Assembly: GCA_001600695.1 (NCBI GenBank)
Contig: BCKQ01000001.1
Span: forward strand, 1,800,005-1,864,004
Length of the DNA: 64,000 bases
From: Ascoidea asiatica JCM 7603
Taxonomy: Eukaryota; Fungi; Ascomycota
Direction of reading: 5' to 3'
The position numbers and the translations under genes are program-made. Positions within the stretch are counted from its first letter, which is position 1. The number at the start of each line of letters is the position of its first letter. Positions 15,008 through 45,275 of this stretch are shown piece after piece. Under the pieces are notes generated by a model. It saw only the letters and a list, made by a program, of their open reading frames with translations. It made no database searches and was not told the DNA's origin.

Positions 15008-15814
15008 TTAAAAACGATGAGATATATGATTATCATTTAAAGTAATATCATCTTCATTAGTTTTATTACTATTTAAATCATTTGATAAAATATTTTTTGA
15101 AAATATTTTTGGATAAAAATCATAACATAAATTTAATAAATAAATTCCATACCAAAATGATAAAGTCCATTCACAAATTGCACTTGCTTTTTTCTTTTTT
15201 TTTTCCATACCAATTCCAAAACCAAGAGCTAAACCAATTGCAATTATACACCAAATTGATTTAAAAATTCCAGAATTTGTTAAATAATTATATTTTTTAA
15301 TATTTTTATTATTAAAAAATTTTTGATTTTTATTTAATTTATAATAATTTAAACCCATTGAAATATGTTCAGCAGTTAAAGATATACAACTAAAAAAAAT
15401 TCCAGCAACAAAAAGTGAAACCATAATAATATGAACATGATGAAAATTATTTGTATTAAAAATTGAACAAAATAAAATACCAAATTGACCAATAATACAA
15501 AAAATAATTGATAAATAACTTAAAACAATTTCATAATTTTTAAAATTTTTTTGTAATTTACCAGTTTTTCTAAGATGTCTTTTAAAAATTAAAGCTAAAA
15601 TAAAAAAAATTGCTTGAAATCCAGCACATGAAATAAATAAAGGTTGTAAATTAGTTGCACCAATATCAGAAATATAAATAGGAAATTGATCTTTAGACAT
15701 AAACCAATAAATTGGATGACCTTGAAAAGACCAACAAGCTAACATTGCAATTAACATACCATACCAAACAATCAAAGCTACACTTGGAATCATCCAATAA
15801 TGAAAGATTTTCAT
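15008..15814 (-). CDS. SFK1: Frag1/DRAM/Sfk1 family membrane protein
   Basis: WYGMLIAMLACW.FQGHPIY, IYISDIGATNLQPLFISC, SIFNTNNFHHVH, SAICEW; about 6 TM segments. Confidence 0.92.
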   Translation of the reverse strand: MKIFHYWMIPSVALIVWYGMLIAMLACWSFQGHPIYWFMSKDQFPIYISDIGATNLQPLFISCAGFQAIFFILALIFKRHLRKTGKLQKNFKNYEIVLSYLSIIFCIIGQFGILFCSIFNTNNFHHVHIIMVSLFVAGIFFSCISLTAEHISMGLNYYKLNKNQKFFNNKNIKKYNYLTNSGIFKSIWCIIAIGLALGFGIGMEKKKKKASAICEWTLSFWYGIYLLNLCYDFYPKIFSKNILSNDLNSNKTNEDDITLNDNHISHRF

Positions 15815-16363
15815 TTTTGAAGAATTTAATTTTTATATTCTAATGTGATTTTTAAAAATGAATTGAAACATTTATTACCTTTATGAGGAGGGAGTATTTT
15901 TTTTTTCTATTTGATTTACATAAATAAAAATATGTTAGTTATAATTGAAATCAAGACAAAATAAAACATCAATTCACATTAATCATTGATAAAGTAATAC
16001 ATACACTTATGAATAATATATGGGATGATTTCAAGTCTTCATTGTTTAAATGAAGAAGAGACAAAAAAAAAAGAATATATAAACTGAATCAATTTAGAAT
16101 TGAAGAAGTTGTTTGAATAAAAATTAAGCGCCAAATTCCATACATTTAAATATTAACTAAATAAAGAATGTTGATTATTTATTATTTATTATTGATTATT
16201 GATTATTGATTATTGATTATTGATTATTATTTTGATAAACAGTTATTCAAGTAAAGAAGGTGTAAAATAAGCAATCAGGTTAAATTGAACTTGGGAAGAG
16301 ATCACTCAGTCTCTGAAGATCTGAAATTTGCACTGAAGCTTTGAAATTGCAACTTTTGTCTTG

Positions 16364-30743: not shown

Positions 30744-31261
30744 ATTGAATAATGATTTTCTCTAATATTAATTAATTTAAGTTAGTGATTTTGTATCCAA
30801 ATTCTTCTTCGGTTTTTTTTTTTTTTACTATAACTGCAAACTTTGCAGATTTCATTCACATTTTTTTTTTTTAATTTTTTTGTTAATTGAAATTGACTCT
30901 AGCTAGTCAATTTTCTTTCTTCTTAATAATAAATATTATTCTAATCAATAAAAACCAATAAATAAATATGTTAAAGAATTAATGTATCAATCAATCATTA
31001 AATAATAATAAAATGGGTAAATATTGTAGATTATTAATAAAAAACTTACGGAAACTCGGAAACCAGTTTAATGGATCAGTATAAATACATATTGAAAGAA
31101 ATTCCGGCGGGAAAAGAAGCAAAACTAGGAATATGAAATCAATGTTTATCTCGGAGACTCTTTACTTGAATAATAACTTTCAATACCTACTACATTTTTA
31201 AATTGAAAGTAACTTTTTATTCAGAATTTACTTTTCAAAGTTTGATGCAATAAATTCTATA

Positions 31262-32117
31262 ATGAAATCAGGCATGTATTTTCTTTCAACAATAGTTTCC
31301 AAAGACTGGAAAAATTCTCAAAGCTTTATCAATTTTGACTAACAAACATAAATCAATCATAAAATTAGACAATTCTGGCAATTCAATTTTTGAAAACATT
31401 ATTTGTAAACAAAATACTAAAACCCAGAATCTTCAAAAAAATTTAAAAGCTTTCAATAAGAATAGATATATATCTCAGTCTAAAATCAATTTAAACAATT
31501 CAATTTCAAAAACTTCTTATAAAATCAACAAACAGTTTGCAAACAATTCTAAAACTTCTAAAAATAATCGACCTCAATGCATTAAAACAGGTTCTTACCT
31601 TGGAAGGGGAACTAGATTTAAAAAAGTTAATCACAATAAATCATCTGGTTATAGATTTGATAAGAATATCAAACTATTTCAGTTACCAATTTTCAAACCT
31701 GAAAAAAAACAAGAATACGAGAAATTAAGAAAACAATTATCAAAAACTTTAGTACCGTTAGCAAAAAAAAATTCATTTGAGTATACAAACTATTTGGCTT
31801 TAGAATTGATTTATTATTTGGCAAAAGAATTATCAATTGATAATCTTAGGAAAATCATCTCAACCTTAGAAGTAATTTGTAAAAATAAGAAACATCAGAT
31901 AAAACACAATAATTTATCAACTAATAATGCTTCCTTTGGTCATTATGGAAAACGACGACCTAAAGGAAAACTTAACTTTGAAGGTGGAATTAAAAGAAAT
32001 AAAAATTTAATTCAGAATGATCTTTATGATCACGCTATAAATTCAATAATGGAAGAAGATATGAAAGCTAAAGAAGATGAATTCACAGATGATTTCAACC
32101 AAATGAGTATATCTTAA
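31262..32117 (+). CDS. eIF3j (Hcr1)-like protein, 252 aa; exon1 31262-31271, GC-AG intron 31272-31368, exon2 31369-32117
   Basis: The C-terminal half, PIFKPEKKQEYEKLRKQLSKTLVPLAKKNSFEYTNYLALELIYYLAKELSIDNLRKIISTLEVI...GKRRPKGKLNF.GG.K...DDF, follows yeast Hcr1 (as recalled: PLFNAETKREYQDLRKAL...[33 protein letters not shown]...GKKKVKGKTNLGG). The track ORF has only a TTG start. Splicing ATGAAATCAG|GCATGT...GACTAAC...TTAG|AC restores an in-frame ATG. Confidence 0.8.
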
Positions 32118-35100
32118 TTTTTGTATTTTACGAAAACCTTTAATGCTCTAAACGTACTTTAAAAAGTCCCTGTACAACTAAGATTTTGCAATGAAGTTTT
32201 ATTTTAAAAGCGTGATTAAAATTTAGAGTGTTGTTCGGAAGTAATTATCCCTTAAATGAATTAATTTTCAACGTTTTCTAAAGTATGTAACAGAATATAA
32301 ATTACACGTGAAAGAACTTAGAAGGAGGATCATTTTATTTTTTTATTTTCAACTAACTCGTTTATATCACATGGCGTTTACGAGAAAAACCACAAATTCC
32401 TTCCATAAGGGGGTAAGTGTTTTCAATTTGTTTATTCTAGATTTTTATTGTTCATTATTGAAAAATCTTTTTTTATTGTTTAACAATTGTTTATTGTTTA
32501 AGAATGAAAACCAAAAGGTATATTCAAAGTCCAATAATGTGAAGTCGATGATATAATAAAAGATCTGCTCTTATTTTAAGGCAAAAATGTTTGATTATGA
32601 AAACTTCATGAAGTAAATCTTCTTTAAAAAAAAAACTACGGTGTATTGAATACACAACGAATCTGGTTTTACTTTTTGTAACGTTTACTTTCAAAAATGC
32701 CCTGTACTTCTTAAATTTGAAATTTAATCTGCAAAAGGATCTATTATTTAATTTATTCAAATGATTGTTTTTGATTTTTGATATTTTAATAGATTTTAAT
32801 AAAAATTACTTTGTAAGCAAATCAGAAATTAAAAATTGATCTTAAAATTAGGAACTTGAGGTTTAAGGACTATTTAGAGAATATTAAATGAAAATACGAG
32901 TAAATAGAATATATTAAAGAAAATCGGAAGAATTGTGAAAAGAAGCTTCTTTGTAGATTGTGCTACTGTAGCAGTAGACCCAGATTTTTTCAAAAACAGA
33001 ATTTTTTTTGCTTCCGATCGTTTCTGAAGGGGTATCTAAGATACCTTCTTTTGGGCCCATCGATGCTCTTTTTACTTCAAGAAGCGGCCCTTTGTGGAAT
33101 GCATTTTAGAAAAAACGAATTAGTAAAAGACAAAAAAAAGGATTTTGGCTGTATTTTGAAGTAAACTAGCTGAATAGCGGGCACTTTTAGGAACTTTAGC
33201 CCTTTGGACACCTTTGACATTTCTGTTGAAGTGGTTGAACTGTTGAGATTTCTCTGCTGTTTGTGCTGTTTTTGCTGCTTCTGAGGGTTGTTAATTGGAG
33301 CGAAGGCTACGTAATTCAGAAGATCAATCCCAAGCCTTCAACCGTATTTTTTTCAGTTGATCTGTATTTTTTCAATAACCCTCAATAGATTGAAGCCACA
33401 TATTTTTAATAGATCTAATATATAAAATAATTATTAATAATACATTATAATAAATAATAATAATTCTTCAAGTGGCATAAGTCAATTTCTAATAAATCTG
33501 CCTCAATCATCTTTTAACAATGCCTTACCAAATTCTTTTCAGTTCCAATTCAGGGGAATGAAAAGTAACTGATGGATTGAATTGAAAGATTTTTTCACAA
33601 TTCTTCTCGGAGATTCTTTAAATTCGCTAACCGCCGAGAAGATACAAAGGAAAAAGCAAAATAAAAAAAAACAAAAGAACAATCAATTCAAATAACGTAG
33701 ATATACCTTTTTTTTTATTTCATTTTATTTCAATCAATTTATTTCTTCATTTCAGTTTAATGGTTTAGTATTTTAATTTTATAGTAAATGTATTGTAGTA
33801 CAATTCTAGTTCAATGGTTCATTATATTCAGTCTTGATTTTTATTCATAATTTTTCAACTTCTAAAATTAAATTCTCCAAAATATCTGTTTTTACAATTC
33901 ATCGCGATTTTGATAGAAGGTGCATATATTTTGGTGTAAATCACAGTAATGATAAAGGATAAATAATAAATTATAATTCGTTCATAATAAATACTGGTAA
34001 ATAATATTTTCAATCAAGAGTCAAATACATGCACTTCTCATGTACTAAAAGTTATGTTAGGTTTGCCCAAGTGACAAGTCCAACTGGTTTTAGTAGCTTT
34101 TATTTACAAATTTGGTCAGAAAATAGTTCAGTGATATAAACCTTTTCTAAATTTCCCAAGTTGACTTTGCTCAACTTAATCAGGCTTTAAATTTGAAGCT
34201 TTTATCCTTAGGATATGATAATAAAATGATATGATACTATGAATATTCAAAGTTAACAATTAATAAAATGATTTATTCTCATGTTTTCATATTAACTTCT
34301 TCAAAACTTTTTTAATAATTATTGAATAACGTTGCTGTTTTTATTTGTCTAACATTTTAAATTTTTTTTAAAAAAAATATTATTACCGGTAGTTAAATTA
34401 AATTAAATTAAATTAAATTATCATTATCATTATTATCATTATTGGCTTTTACTTTTTTTTTGCTTTTTTAAATAATTTATTGTAATCATTCTTCAAAACT
34501 GTTTTTATGTGCATTCAGATTAAATTATTATAATTTTCATTATTCTTGTATGCTTTTCACTTTAAAAAGGTTAAAAAGCTGCCATTTTCTTTACAAATTC
34601 TCTAAAGGACATCAATTGATTAAAGCTACAATTCTTTCAAAAATTTTCAGTAATAATTTTTACTCTACAACACTAACTTTTCTCAATCAATCAACATATT
34701 AATCTGCAATATCAATATTTATAAAAAAAAAAAATTAAAAAAAAGATTTATTCAACTCCATTTGAAATAATTCATAACAACTCTGTTACATTTTCATGAA
34801 TTATAATTTACAATTAATCAAATTATTTCCTTCTTGATTCAATCAATTAAAAATTTGCCCATAATATTATTTCAACTTCAATTTCAATCTCAATCTCACA
34901 TTTAAATCTAAATATCTGTTTTTCTTATATTTTTGATCATATATTATTCTTTAACCTCCCTTCAATAATTACATAAACAAAAACCACTTCATAGATTTCC
35001 CTATCAGATTTTTCAACTTAAATATATTTAAAATTATAACCATAAATTAGTCAGTATAATATAATCATTATAATATAATCATTATCATTTATCATTTATA

Positions 35101-36098
35101 ATTATCTAGATTTTAGTTTTTTTCAGCAAAATATTCATAAAGTCTACTAGAAAAAAACATTTATAAATTCATAATTTTATAAACTATTAAACCGTTGAAT
35201 CTAATAAACTGTTAAAGCATATTAATTTAAGACAAAAAAATTCCTGAGAAAAAAATATCTTCCATTAGTCTCAATACATCAATATCTTGAAATAGTTAAT
35301 TAATACTCAAAATAATAAAAGTTTCTTGTTTCAAACTAAATAAATCAATAAAATAATTCATATATAGAAAAAGAAAAGAAAAATCATACTTTATTTCTTT
35401 ACCTTATTAAAAATACAATGAATCAAATAAAATAACTAAGATCAAATTCCTATATAAGTAACGCGTATGAATAATAATATAGAAAATAAAAAAGATATAA
35501 TAAATAAACAAATAAATTTTTTAAACTTTGATTTCACTGCAAATATTAAAGATAAATCATTACAAGCAATATTCATCATTGGAATCTCAAATAATATCAC
35601 TTAAATTTTCTTTTTTTAATTTAAATCCCTGCAGTACATCAAAAATTCTCACAAAAAACAAAACGAAAATCCCTTCAGAATAAATTTTAAATACAATTTC
35701 TTATAAATTTACGATAACTTTTTTTGCATTTTTGAGTTAAATTCATTCATTCCTTTTACATTTATTCATTCTCTGATTATCATTTCTATCAAAACTATTT
35801 CATTCAAATACCGGTATTTAAATATTTCTCATTTTCCGAATAATAAATCTATAATTTATAAGTTATTGGTCAAAAATTTTAAAAGCTTATAGTTTTTAAC
35901 TTAGTAACCTAATAGGTTAGAGAAAGAACAGATAAAACTTTTCCTTTTTCTCATTTATTTTAATCAAATTTTCTCTACTAAGAAAAATTATTTTATTTTT
36001 ATCTTTTTTTCTCTTAACTTGAACACATTAACAAATTTGGAAGTTATTACAAAAATTAAATTGTTTAGTCTCTTATTTTCAAAAATAACATTTTTTTC

Positions 36099-37877
36099 AT
36101 GTTAACAATAATGCACAAACGTTCTGAATCGATTCTGCAAAGTTCACCAAAATCATCATTAAATTTTTCTAGGTGGAATATCGAAATGGACGCTGCCTTA
36201 GTAAAATTTGCAATTCAACAAGTTGATGATACTTATATTAAAACTGGAGATTTTTCTAGAAAAGCATGGGCCAAAATTATTAAACAATTATCAATTCTAT
36301 TTCCAGATAAAATTCAAAAATTTGACAAAAGTAAATTATTAGCTCACTTTAGAGATGTTCTTGTTAAAGATCATCAAGTTTGGAGAGATATAAAACTGCA
36401 TGGTGTTGGTATTGTGTGGTCAGAAACTCAAAATTGTTTTGTAATTGATAATAATTCTGATACTCTAGAAAACTTTTTTGCCAATCAAGGTGCAAATAAA
36501 GAATTGTTTGAAAGAAATAAAAAGAAGTTGAGTATCATGAAATTTATGTTCATGACAAACTGTTGTTTTTATCTTTCCTGGTTTGATAAATATCTTTATC
36601 GTCATGATGAAAACATTGAATTAAAAAAAATAGACTACAAAAATCTAAGTTTGGATTTACCAGATATGTCATCTGCAAGTTTCCCTTCCAGAGCATTTGC
36701 AAAAACTCATCAATTAAAAAGTTTTTTTCAACAGCAGCAACAAGCTCAACAACAACAAGAGCAACAAGCTCAGGAACAACAACAGCAAAGACAACAGCAA
36801 CAACAACAACAACAGCAATTAACCACCTCAGATATATTATCAAATCAATTCGGATCGTTGCAATCAAGATTATCAAATAATCAGTTCAACCCACAGTTAG
36901 TTAATCAGATGAATAACTCATTAACTGGCCAGTTAAGTCCTCAAATAAGTAATCAACTCAATATAAATGCTCAATTCAATAATCAACTCGCCTCTCAATA
37001 TCAGCTCTCTAACCAAATGGTCGGTCAAATGAATCAACAATTAACACCAGGACTAAGCAATGAATTATCAAACCAATTTCAATACCAAACATTTCATAAT
37101 CCAATATTACATAATACAATAGAATCCTTACAATCATCAAATACACTACAATCATTGTCTTCTTCAAATCAATTAGGACAACCTCAAAATCATTCATCAA
37201 ATGATCCTAGTTCTTCATCAGCCTTAGCTTCAAGTCCACATGGTTCGATGTCAATGCAAATGATGTCTGCAGCCCCTCAATATGCCACATCTTCATTAGC
37301 AACACCAAGTGGTATTTCAAATAACGCACTAAATTTAGCTGGATCTGCTTTAAATACAAGAACTTCTCAAGGAAGTCTACAAAGCAGTTTACATGAAAGC
37401 TTAGGTTCAAGTAAAAGTCGTTCCAACTCGCATGTATCTGTTTCCAGCGGTAGAATAACAAAACCTGAGTCCTCACCTAGAAGTCTCACAACAATAACAT
37501 CCAGGTCTGCATTATCTACTTTAGAATTATTGACGTCAAAATCATCTATGCTTACACAAAGCCAGAAAACTTTAAAAGAATCAATGGAGAGAAAAATAGT
37601 AGACCATGTAATAAATTTAAAGCAAGACCAATTTAAAAAAATCTCTTCGGTGATATATCAACTACATAACTCAAATTTAATTTCAATGGATTACCAAATA
37701 TTATTTTCAAGAAATTATACCAGACAGAGGGAATTTCATCTTGTGAATAGAATATTAATAAATGATCAACTATCGTATGAAGAAAGAGCAAACTATTTCA
37801 ATCAATTCATGGAAAGGTATATTGCAACCAATCATGATAGTAGTGATCATGCTAGTAGAGATTCTGACAGCGAGTGA
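36099..37877 (+). CDS. Myb/SANT-like DNA-binding domain protein (PIF/Harbinger ORF1 type) with poly-Q and S-rich regions
   Basis: RWNIEMDAALV...TGDFSRKAWAKIIKQL..LFP...FDKSKL...LVKDHQVWRDI...GIVWSE matches the W..MD..L / G.F...AW..I / L.K....W / G..W pattern of Myb_DNA-bind_3. Confidence 0.72.
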   Translation: MLTIMHKRSESILQSSPKSSLNFSRWNIEMDAALVKFAIQQVDDTYIKTGDFSRKAWAKIIKQLSILFPDKIQKFDKSKLLAHFRDVLVKDHQVWRDIKLHGVGIVWSETQNCFVIDNNSDTLENFFANQGANKELFERNKKKLSIMKFMFMTNCCFYLSWFDKYLYRHDENIELKKIDYKNLSLDLPDMSSASFPSRAFAKTHQLKSFFQQQQQAQQQQEQQAQEQQQQRQQQQQQQQQLTTSDILSNQFGSLQSRLSNNQFNPQLVNQMNNSLTGQLSPQISNQLNINAQFNNQLASQYQLSNQMVGQMNQQLTPGLSNELSNQFQYQTFHNPILHNTIESLQSSNTLQSLSSSNQLGQPQNHSSNDPSSSSALASSPHGSMSMQMMSAAPQYATSSLATPSGISNNALNLAGSALNTRTSQGSLQSSLHESLGSSKSRSNSHVSVSSGRITKPESSPRSLTTITSRSALSTLELLTSKSSMLTQSQKTLKESMERKIVDHVINLKQDQFKKISSVIYQLHNSNLISMDYQILFSRNYTRQREFHLVNRILINDQLSYEERANYFNQFMERYIATNHDSSDHASRDSDSE

Positions 37878-41237: not shown

Positions 41238-44200
41238 TTAGGCATTTTGAACCTTGGCATAGTTTGGGGGCCTGAGTTTTCTATTTAATGCTTTTGTACC
41301 CCATATTGGTAGTATTGAAACAGTTAATATAACCACACTTTGCCATAGAAAAGAAAATGAAGAAACATATTCTAAGTCAAAATATTCGCTCAAAAAAGGA
41401 ACAGAAACTATATATATAAGAGCTGTAACTACTTCGGAACTTATCATTGGTTTCGTCCAAGTGTTAATTTCGATTGCAACCATTATTAATTCATTGAAAA
41501 TTAATGTGGTAAAACTTATAGCAACCATAGTTAAAAATTCTTCAGGATCAATTGATGTAAAATTTTGAGAAAAAAGTTGAATAACACATCCTTGATAAAG
41601 AGAAACCAAAAACCATTTGAGAAATGATGTATAAGATAATGACTTACTTATGGTTAATTCTTTATACAATTCAGGATATAATTTTGCTAAGCTCTCATTC
41701 ACATCACAATCTAAAACCAATGAAAAAACAGGTGCCATTGTATACAATGTAGCATAACCAACCATTAGCCAACCTTGATATAATGCCAATGGCTCAAAGG
41801 ATGAAGATATTGAATAAACTGCTTGACAAACTGATATTATTAAACCTCTATGCATTACAAATTGTGCTAATTTTGCTGATCTTTTATAAGAGTTTCTTCC
41901 ATGCCATAATAATAATTTAGTTAAATGACAGAATTGGGTTATTGAAAAATCAGCTGCAAGAGATGCTTGCTTACCTTCTTTTCCAACAATTCCTACACCA
42001 ATATCCGCAGATTGAATCATAGAGACATCATTTCCACCATCACCGATACAACATACCCGCTTTTTTGTGATTTCTCTGATCATCAATGCAACATTTGCTT
42101 TTTGTTGAGGAGTACATCTACAAGCAATAACTGCTGGCAAATTAACAACAATATCAAAAAATTCTTTCTTATAATATTTCATAAATATTCCTAAAGATTC
42201 ACCATCAATTAATAAACAAGCATCTCTATTTGTTCTTAAATATTCAATAGTCCCTAATATATTTGGTTGATTCTCATTCAATTTTGTTATTGTATGAACA
42301 TATTGACCTCTTGAAATTAATTTAGCACTTACAGAAACACATCTTGCGGTTTCAACTTTATCACCAGTTAACATCCAAATTTTAATACCAGCATTTCTCA
42401 ATAATTCAATTGAAGATTTAACATCTAATTGTAATTTATCTTCAACTCCCGTTAATCCAAGTAAATCAAGATCATGTTCAAGATATTTATTTATAACACT
42501 AGCCATTAGTGCATCTCTATTATACATTGATAATGAAGATTCATGATATTTTTCTTTAAAAGTTTTATACAAATTCTCACTTAATTTTTTTCTAGCAATA
42601 ACTAAAGTTCTTAAACCTTCTCTTGCCATATTTCCTACTTCTTCATCTAACCAATCACTATGTTGAACAATTTTTGCCATTACAGTATCAGCTCCTTTTT
42701 CTAAAAACAAATATTCATCTTTCTGTTTATCTTTTATAATAATTCCCATTCTTTTTGTATCTGAATTAAAAGGAAAAACTTGTAAAATATCATAATATAA
42801 TGGAGTTGAAGTTTGATTATGAATTAAAGTTATAGAAGTTCTATCTCTTTTATATAAAGATAAACCTACAGATTCAGTAAATTTAACAATGGCAATTTCA
42901 TCTGGAGATGCAGCTTGATAAGATAATTCATTATCTTCAATAGTTGGAGTAACATTATGACAAATAGCTAAAGTTGTAACTAAATCACGTACTCTTTGAG
43001 ATAAATCTCTTCTTGATTTTGAAATTTCCATTGAATGATTTGTATAATCAAGATTAGAAGAATTATTTTCAAATTTAAAATTTGTTATATAATCAGTAAC
43101 AATATCCATTGAATCACCAGCATAAGAAACAGTACCAAGATGTAATTTTTTTAATTCCATATCATTTTGTGTTAAAGTTCCAGTTTTATCAGATAATAAA
43201 TATTCAATTCTACCTAAATCTTCAGGGATTGTACTTGTTCTAACAATTGTTTCTGGAATTGTTTTATCATTTTGAATTTGATAAGCATAAACCGATTTTC
43301 CAAGATCTAAATTAACTCTTAAAGAAACAGGAATAATTGTTGAGAATAAAATTAAATATTTCATTATATCAATATACCAATTTTCTTTATTTTTTTCAAA
43401 ACATACTAAAATTATTGATAATATAAATACAGAAAGACATAAAATTTTAGATAATGAATTAATTTCTAATTCTAATAAAGAAGTTTTAATTTTTGATTTT
43501 GTTGTATTCATTGATTGTCTTGTATCTATACCAGTATAAATAATTATTGCAATTACAGTTCCAGAAGCTAAAACAGTATTAGCCCATAAAGTATTATCAA
43601 CAGTTAATGGAATTGAAGTTGATTCATAAGTTAAATTACCTTGAAAAGAATGAATTGATTTATTTGGAGGTTGAATAGTTAAATGAATATTAAATAAATC
43701 ATTAAAATTTAAATTTTGAGTTAAATTAGAAGCAACTCTTAATTTCCAATCAGTTTCACCATCTAATTGATCAGTTTTTATAAAAGATTCACCATTTATT
43801 TCAGAAGAATTTAAAAGTATACAATCTGCAGGAATTCTACTACCTTTATTAATTTTTATTAAATCTCCAACTTTTAAATTTTTACTTTGAGTTGAAATTG
43901 TATTTTTAATAATAGAAGAAGAAGTAGTAGAAAGTAAATTATTATTATCAATTATAGAATTATTAATTGTATTAATATTTGAATCAGATAAAGGATTATT
44001 AATTAATTGAGAAAATAATTCATTATTTGATTCATTATCTCTTTTTCTTCTTTTAATATCATCTATAGCTTCTTTTAACATTGTTACAGATAATACAAAA
44101 GCTAAAGGTACAATATAAGAAGATAAATAACCAATTCTTAATGGAGGTATAGCTTGAGATAAAGCAACAATTAAGAAATATAAATTAAAAAAAAATTTAA

Positions 44201-44327
44201 ATTGTTCATATAATATCACAGGTATGAAAGTAAATGGATTATATTTTGCATTTGAGATAAAATTTGAATTAAAATTTGAATTATTTATACCTGGATATAT
44301 ATTTCTATCTTTTTGAATAATTTGAGA

Positions 44328-44372
<45 letters not shown>

Positions 44373-45275
44373 GTTGCTATTATTATTAGTATTAGGATTA
44401 ATATTTGAAGATAATGGTAATAAAATTGAATTTTTTCTTTTATTATTTAATATTAAATTTTTAAGATAAATTATGACAGATTGAATAATATTACGATTAT
44501 TATTATTTATGATGATATTATTAATATTATTTTGATTATCAATAATATAATTAGAGTTATTATTGATGGAACTATTAATAATATTTCTACTATTTCTTTT
44601 ATTATTTCTAATACTATTTCTTTTACTATTTCTATAATTATTTCTTTTATTATTATTTGAAGAAATCATTGGAGTTGATGAATTTATATTTAAATCAGAT
44701 TGTATATCATCATAATCATTATCATCAATTATGAAGTCATCAATATCTATATCATTGTCATTATCATTATCATTATCATCATCATTATCATTATCAGTAT
44801 CATAATTATAATCATTTATATTTCTATTGGAATTGATGATATTATTATTATTGTTATTATTAAGATTAATATTAAGGTTATCTATTGAATGAGAATTGAA
44901 ATTAGAACTTGTCGATTTAGAATAATAATGTTTATTATAAATATTTGAATCATTAATTGAATTTGAAGACATATTATTTAAAGGTATTAAAACACTTTTA
45001 TTATTTATATAACTATTTCTTTTTTTTGAATAATTATTATTATTAATATTATTAATATTATTATTATTACTTAAATTAAAATCTGAAGAAGAATGAAAAT
45101 CTTGAAATGGATTAAAATCAGGTTGAATATCAGTTAATGATAAATTATTATCTAAAGTATGATTACTTGAATTATTTAAATTATTTAAATTATTTAAATT
45201 ATTTAAATTATTTATTGTTGAACTTTCACTTGAATCAGATAAAGATTGATAATCTTTTTTATTATTTTCTAACAT
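41238..45275 (-). CDS. NEO1: P4-ATPase aminophospholipid flippase Neo1
   Basis: ISNAKYNPFTFIP, KTDQLDGETDWKLR, IIPVSLRVNLD, DKTGTLTQN phosphorylation motif, WMLTGDKVETA, CIGDGGNDVSMIQ, RPPNYAKV C-terminus, with an N-rich N-terminal extension. Confidence 0.98.

Follow-up and report, generated by a model that had tools for sequence, protein, structure and literature searches.

eIF3j, known in S. cerevisiae as Hcr1, is normally the product of a single-copy gene in yeasts, and its two halves are separable: the N-terminal half docks on eIF3b and governs start-codon stringency, and the C-terminal half lies in the mRNA entry channel of the 40S subunit and acts with ABCE1. As reference structures of S. 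cerevisiae Hcr1/eIF3j we take PDB 6ZCE and 7A1G, and for human eIF3j the 3BPJ dimer, 6ZMW and 6YBW. On the eIF3 side, a Trp-containing acidic motif (yeast Trp37, human Trp52) docks on the eIF3b RRM, and Trp37 is needed for this contact (PMC2824034). On the 40S side, the KERR motif is required for RPS2 and RPS23 binding in GST pull-downs (PMC2824034), yeast K230, K231 and K234 contact h33/h34 of the 18S rRNA beside the mRNA entry latch (PMC7780240), and on 40S-ABCE1 complexes the working form of eIF3j is an entangled dimer (PMC7780240). In S. cerevisiae the N-terminal half of Hcr1 alone suffices for wild-type growth (PMC2824034).

The window analysed here, a 64-kb stretch of Ascoidea asiatica DNA with ~25% G+C, carries a gene that compares unevenly with these systems. 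Like S. cerevisiae Hcr1 and the canonical copy of the same genome, its product has a three-helix domain, a basic tail with the equivalents of K230/K231/K234 and an acidic C-terminus. It differs from both, however, in having neither the Trp-acidic motifs nor the DLNNAADLF block, in a degenerate KERR and in an altered DDDFM; it is also ~23 aa shorter, has a GC for a GT donor and sits on a branch 10-20 times as long as those of other yeast eIF3j. Its closest parallel is a truncation made in the laboratory, hcr1-CTD [136-265] (PMC2824034), which likewise consists of the C-terminal functional half only, whereas the paralog occurs in nature, carries a long basic arm at its N-terminus and has lost KERR too. 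The fold is also that of human eIF3j (Z 6.8), whose working form is an entangled six-helix-bundle dimer (PMC7780240), but the human protein has an acidic Trp52 motif that binds the eIF3b RRM and the paralog has none. Use of eIF3j-related sequence outside the canonical j subunit is seen as well in the HCR1-like domain of eIF3a/Tif32; that domain, in contrast, is defined by KERR conservation and belongs to a large eIF3 core subunit, while the paralog is without KERR. In the literature we came upon no yeast eIF3j paralog described as being without the acidic motif. The C-terminal half alone, as a natural gene beside an intact HCR1, would amount to a ready-made separation-of-function allele.

A second eIF3j locus beside the canonical HCR1

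An earlier note on this DNA had placed a divergent eIF3j/Hcr1 paralog at 31262-32117 (+) of the window, and start and stop codons are indeed found at those ends (ATG at 31262, TAA at 32115-32117). The frame is open only with a 97-nt GC-AG intron (31272-31368) removed, since in the long ORF at 31335-32117 (+) the first in-frame ATG comes only close to the end; the ATG at 31262 lies in another frame and, if unspliced, leads to a stop after 26 codons. Removal of the intron gives a protein of 252 aa. The features of the locus are the following:

31080-31087 (+), candidate TATA box TATAAATA, ~175 nt 5' of the ATG; possibly a chance occurrence in this AT-rich genome
31104-31111 (+), putative partial URS1-like core (CGGCGG) in the promoter, CCGGCGGG
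31133-31201 (+), upstream ORF of 22 codons, read from the sequence; relevant only if inside the transcript
31245-31253 (+), minimal uORF ATG-CAA-TAA, likewise a reading of the sequence, ending 8 nt before the main ATG
31262-31271 (+), exon 1, ATGAAATCAG, encoding Met-Lys-Ser and the first base of codon 4, with A at -3
31272-31368 (+), GC-AG intron of 97 nt, predicted to be spliced, with 5' GCATGT, branch GACTAAC at 31337-31343 and 3' TAG
31369-31664 (+), basic Asn/Lys/Ser-rich N-terminal region, spliced residues ~4-102, without recognisable eIF3j motif
31707-31925 (+), three-helix eIF3j domain (dimerisation/40S-contact bundle), assigned from pLDDT 86-93, Z scores and 49% identity to the canonical copy
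31881-31913 (+), degenerate KERR position, K-x5-I-K-x2-N against K-x5-E-R-x2-R, aligned in Saccharomyces numbering
31947-32003 (+), basic tail GKRRPKGKLNFEGGIKRNK, counterpart of the Hcr1 tail that in yeast reaches into the 40S latch/mRNA entry region
32049-32117 (+), acidic C-terminus (…EDEFTDDFNQMSIS) and stop codon, with the universal terminal DDDFM altered and extended in the alignments

The first AG 3' of the branch point is the acceptor itself (31367-31368), none lying between branch and 3' site, and the intron is one of only two intron-like patterns in the 64 kb. The CGGCGG hexamer occurs in the window, both strands counted, at 31105 (+), 157 nt upstream of the paralog ATG, and at 33631 (-), in the long gap between the paralog and a Myb/SANT-like gene, and nowhere else; ~0.5 occurrences are expected by composition. 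Two other readings of the 5' end were discarded. An alternative exon 1 (ATGG at 31013, GTAAAT donor, in phase) gives way to the 31262 model, which is homologous to the canonical exon 1 and intron, and an origin of exon 1 in a local tandem repeat (ATGAAATCA present twice, at 31133 and 31262) is unsupported.

Exon 2 (window 31371-32114) served as the query in database searches, and the spliced CDS was used for translation and composition. Exon 2 matched Pfam PF08597 (eIF3_subunit) with 52.8 bits (cut-off 28.9; E 6.7e-14), the match spanning positions 133-249 of the profile's 250 only; when the whole genome was scanned with this profile, the paralog scored 51.1 bits. Among solved structures the closest relative is yeast eIF3j (6zce_t, E 8e-18); the alignment spans residues 129-249 and takes in the GKKKVKGK-NLGG tail. 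AlphaFold2, given an alignment of 38 sequences (A1), modelled three helices at pLDDT 86-93 and rendered the N-terminal region as a low-confidence helix. An exhaustive structure aligner ranked 6zce_t first (Z 7.8, rmsd 2.6 A, 81 of 84 residues aligned) and human 3bpj_A second (Z 6.8), with unrelated coiled coils following at 4.8 at most; a Foldseek search of the PDB with the whole model returned no match. Profile, solved relative and fold all agree with the assignment, made in the earlier note, of the C-terminal part to the Hcr1 helical bundle and its GKK/KGK-N-GG tail. The window gene is a genuine eIF3j paralog and a real duplicate gene. It belongs to the eIF3j homology family, but two features that define the functional subunit are missing from it, the acidic Trp motif and KERR.

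The genome (20.3 Mb, 71 contigs) holds exactly two eIF3j loci. The second is a canonical HCR1 on another contig (G000:C3:1455824-1456732, minus strand; PF08597 E 7e-48 over positions 5-250), the product of which starts MSWDDEDF and carries three Trp-acidic motifs, so that the window gene is not the only HCR1 of the genome. In the canonical gene, exon 1 (ATGAGTTGGG) is 10 nt long and is followed by an 87-nt intron with donor GTATGT and branch TACTAAC, which interrupts codon 4 behind its first base (G000:C3:1456646-1456732; L001 2313-2409, minus strand). Exon 1 length (10 nt) and the phase-1 intron in codon 4 are common to both genes, and next to the donor dinucleotide both introns continue with ATGTAT. 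The start codon, 10-nt exon 1 and phase-1 intron position, all shared, show the paralog to be a descendant of the canonical HCR1. The same positional homology of ATG, exon 1 and intron excludes a hidden acidic upstream exon; together with the two loci, it disposes of the possibility, raised in the earlier note, of a sole HCR1 with an acidic exon that had gone unnoticed.

The codon-4 intron is absent from the HCR1 genes of Ascoidea rubescens, Saccharomycopsis crataegensis and Pachysolen, a distribution that suggests a lineage-specific gain, or else repeated loss elsewhere. The simplest history would be intron gain in this lineage, then duplication at the DNA level, not by retroposition. Since the two genes share the 10-nt exon 1 and a phase-1 intron that three relatives lack, the paralog is most likely a lineage-specific, DNA-level duplicate. 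Its C-domain is 49% identical to that of the canonical copy over 115 aa, and nucleotide homology between the two loci is confined to this domain (69% over 230 nt). Neither a segmental duplication nor a transposon-mediated copy accounts for it, as the flanks are not homologous and no dispersed repeat borders the paralog. No partner was co-duplicated, eIF3b and ABCE1 both being single-copy; a second PF04068 match, considered as a second ABCE1, proved to be TSR3.

A word-indexed protein search with exon 2 gave no match, and phmmer against 1.84 billion representatives gave nine, all of them canonical MSW-type eIF3j, with neither an ortholog nor a similar N-terminus among them; the best (P0001) reaches the N-region only through low-complexity Lys/Asn runs. 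The terminal branch of the paralog, at 2.0-4.1 substitutions per site, is 10-20 times as long as the family median (0.14-0.21). In the full-length tree the paralog groups with another long branch, and the C-domain tree is a polytomy, with a clade of the paralog and the canonical copy still acceptable by the AU test (p = 0.27); codon-level likelihood favours this clade by 6.9 lnL units, a preference that shared codon bias could cause. In A. rubescens, the closest named relative (canonical Hcr1 53-55% identical, Neo1 77%), the neighbourhood of NEO1 and the Myb/SANT gene is conserved and collinearity ends there, with no eIF3j-like sequence within 6 kb beyond the syntenic NEO1-Myb locus. Because collinearity stops at this point, the lack of the paralog there is no more than suggestive.

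Live gene or decaying duplicate

Taken together, the sequence features point to a gene that is probably functional. The strongest rival, which we consider possible though on balance unlikely, is a dying duplicate that has lost its N-terminal half, whose donor has passed from GT to GC, that is silent or barely expressed, and whose open frame is a remnant of recently ended constraint. The frame itself is hard to reconcile with decay. It contains no stop, whereas the other five frames contain 15-38, and its 249 codons are open in a genome of 25% GC in which ~8.5% of random codons are stops. Upon shuffling of the N-region, the frame was open in 5e-5 of the trials; neutral simulation from the canonical N-region left it without a stop with a probability of 1e-3 at 0.25 and 5e-5 at 0.5 substitutions per site, which makes the open frame improbable even at modest divergence. 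An open frame under neutral drift is thus very unlikely. Moreover, the N-region is free of frameshifts despite having diverged beyond recognition, and the branch point, 3' splice site and phase are all intact.

Substitution rates are to be read with more caution. A codon branch model of four taxa and 109 C-domain codons yielded an omega of 0.10-0.16 on the paralog branch against 0.03 in the background and rejected omega = 1 on that branch with p from 0.05 to 0.012 according to the topology; owing to saturation at synonymous sites, omega is rough, at about 0.1-0.2, and neutrality only marginally rejected. For the C-domain of the paralog and the canonical copy, NG86 gave dN/dS of 0.43/0.99, and pairwise YN00 and LWL85 estimates were unstable because of the saturation. 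A dN/dS near 1, which the earlier note had named as the mark of a decaying duplicate, is at odds with the C-domain, where omega lies below 1 within these limits. The N-region, on the other hand, has an NG86 dN/dS of 1.11/1.01, about equal, as decay would have it. The branch of 10-20 times the family median and the want of an ortholog among the 1.84 billion representatives also suit a dying copy, as do the near-invariant columns of the C-part (alignment A1), 17 of 29 of which are kept and 12 changed, the latter including KERR and the LIRD motif.

The signals for expression likewise fall on both sides. Two uORFs possibly lie 5' of the ATG, and GCATGT...ACTAAC pairs occur genome-wide at chance level (13 vs 12 in the control), whereas GTATGT pairs are enriched (129 vs 71); GC donors are accordingly no regular class in this genome. 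The uORFs, the equality of dN and dS in the N-region and the unenriched donor were all counted against a live gene. A GCAUGU donor is nonetheless used efficiently in an S. cerevisiae reporter, where it needs Hub1 and a surface of Prp8 (PMC12830679). If the paralog is silent, it would be a well-preserved case of asymmetric decay after duplication under AT bias, with the charge reversal of its N-terminus as a G-to-A by-product.

The two halves of the product

The first 100 residues of the paralog include 21 K+R, two D+E and no W (N 18%, K 16%, S 13%), against 22, 28 and three in the canonical HCR1, and the whole protein is devoid of Trp; composition of the spliced model thus bears out the description of the N-terminus as Lys/Asn/Ser-rich and nearly acid-free. 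In alignment A1, only 3 of the 28 conserved N-part columns are kept, and the W3, W23 and W37 columns are all gaps or changed. Lost in consequence are all three Trp-acidic motifs, including the equivalent of yeast Trp37, along with the central DLNNAADLF block. A search of a protein atlas with the N-terminal 100 residues retrieved no look-alike. Upstream of the NIKL motif there are 98 codons in the paralog vs 138 in the canonical gene, a net loss of ~40 residues. Since the basic segment is bracketed by the homologous exon 1 and intron and by the C-domain, it most likely diverged in place and was not swapped in.

Between the canonical and the paralogous N-region, codon position 1 drops from 29% to 10% G and rises from 36% to 53% A, which we read as the signature of GAT to AAT (Asp to Asn) and GAA to AAA (Glu to Lys) changes under AT-biased mutation. 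Given this signature, the charge reversal needs no adaptive explanation. The basic N-terminus is not necessarily adaptive and may reflect in-situ decay of a D/E/K-rich segment of which only the frame was preserved. The earlier note had proposed that an acidic N-terminus was replaced by a basic one: as a reversal of charge (21 K/R, 2 D/E) this stands, but as an adaptive replacement it may not hold, in-situ AT-biased decay fitting the data.

The composition also bears on a different reading, in which the basic N-terminus would itself have been selected, for example as a disordered arm for RNA/rRNA binding or nucleolar targeting, in a role unrelated to canonical eIF3j cycles. The reversal of net charge could be taken in its favour. 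The segment has, besides, stayed more polar, and poorer in hydrophobic residues, than if it had drifted to equilibrium: I+L+F+Y make up 21%, against ~40% hand-calculated for random codons of intergenic base composition, and N+K+S exceed the stop-free neutral simulation. Yet the A-rich, G-poor codon pattern is just the one to be expected from G-to-A decay of GAA/GAT/AAA, and the region has no motif, family match or confident structure. We regard a selected arm of this kind as improbable.

At the other end of the protein, the alignment shows K/R/K at the positions of yeast tail lysines K230/K231/K234, so the basic tail is kept. In KERR (K205-x5-E211-R212-x2-R215) the K is kept while E has become I and the two R residues K and N, whereas the canonical copy and A. 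rubescens Hcr1 keep all four residues. Because binding of the CTD to both RPS2 and RPS23 depended on KERR (PMC2824034), these contacts may be missing in the paralog. With the tail lysines kept and the Trp motifs lost (alignment A1; PMC2824034), the 40S/ABCE1-facing half would be retained and the eIF3-facing half absent. The N-terminal half being sufficient for growth in S. cerevisiae (PMC2824034), the paralog keeps the half with the weaker known phenotype. Of the "eIF3-independent" paralog put forward in the earlier note, the paralog is established by the two loci, and the independence holds as far as the loss of the eIF3b-docking Trp motifs from the sequence.

The dimer surface was addressed by two-chain prediction with the paralog and canonical domains, which gave an ipSAE of 0.79 against 0.02 for the best control, with runs agreeing in at least 91% of contacts and a partner pLDDT of at least 74. 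A mark of 0.79 is reached by 51 of 78 solved complexes and by 2 of 108 mismatched pairs. As the eIF3j homodimer is already solved, the score speaks for a compatible surface, not for binding, and may reflect the predictor's memory of that structure.

The explanation that we favour, and to which we give about as much credence as to all others combined, is that of a live but relaxed paralog, whose product dimerises and binds the 40S subunit without docking on eIF3b, as an eIF3j variant or competitor. Under this explanation, a lineage-specific, DNA-level duplicate of HCR1 would have retained its open frame through a period of very rapid evolution. Its basic N-terminus would have arisen in place from an acidic/Lys-rich segment by deletion and G-to-A change (Asp to Asn, Glu to Lys), with selection on the N-region acting chiefly to maintain an open frame and a polar segment. 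Splicing of the GC-AG intron would yield the 252-aa product, which could dimerise with itself or with canonical Hcr1, would sit on the 40S subunit near the mRNA entry channel and would be unable to dock on the eIF3b RRM. Rather than serving as a second eIF3j, such a protein would be a variant that binds the 40S subunit uncoupled from eIF3, or else would partner or compete with canonical eIF3j. If expressed, the paralog should show what the 40S/ABCE1-facing half does alone and whether mixed eIF3j dimers exist.

A more elaborate possibility is a splicing-gated, condition- or stage-specific variant, made only when the weak GC donor is used, which would form mixed eIF3j dimers or replace eIF3j on 40S-ABCE1 post-recycling complexes, free the 40S subunit from docking through eIF3b and thereby retune re-initiation, start-codon stringency or stop-codon read-through in that state. 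The stage-specific part of it would derive from just two features, the weakness of the GC donor and a single promoter CGGCGG, and we hold the whole to be a long shot. Least probable of all is subfunctionalisation, with the paralog still active in eIF3 by way of contacts that involve neither the acidic motif nor KERR: the core domain and tail are retained, but both published determinants, the acidic-motif Trp on the eIF3 side and KERR on the 40S-protein side, are missing, and the single eIF3b gene offers no compensating paralog.

Surroundings of the paralog and a repeat elsewhere in the genome

The 4 kb between the paralog and the Myb/SANT gene (window 32118-36098) contain no ORF of 150 aa or more, and elsewhere in the genome this stretch finds only short low-complexity matches. 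At 32283-32357 (+), 170 nt 3' of the paralog stop, there is a GTATGT...AACTAAC pair that is probably due to chance, since no YAG follows within 60 nt and there is no ORF to join. The other intron-like pattern of the window, GTATGT...AACTAAC...TAG over 98 nt at 15907-16004 (-), lies ~90 nt upstream of the ATG of a 268-aa membrane-protein ORF (15814..15008, -) and is for that reason a candidate 5'-UTR intron.

The Myb/SANT-like gene (36099-37877, +; 592 aa) has a 55%-identical syntenic ortholog adjoining NEO1 in A. rubescens (annotated with 701 aa; L006 14963-17083) and is therefore an old conserved host gene, not the remnant of a recent transposon. Further along, the NEO1 ortholog (41238-45275, -) is an uninterrupted ORF of 1345 aa, against ~1060-1150 aa in relatives; as its first Pfam domain begins only at residue 317, either the N-terminal extension is long or the true start lies later.

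A dispersed repeat of the form ...AATAGAGA(T/C)CTATATATG(G/C)TAGG(G/T)CATAT...GTACTAAC was seen at G000:C3:477479-477534, C3:480364-480419 (inverted), C11:513670-513728 and C14:292331-292402. The copies on C3 share one and the same sequence, face opposite ways and lie 2.9 kb from each other, and the repeat may represent a mobile element or its terminal repeats.
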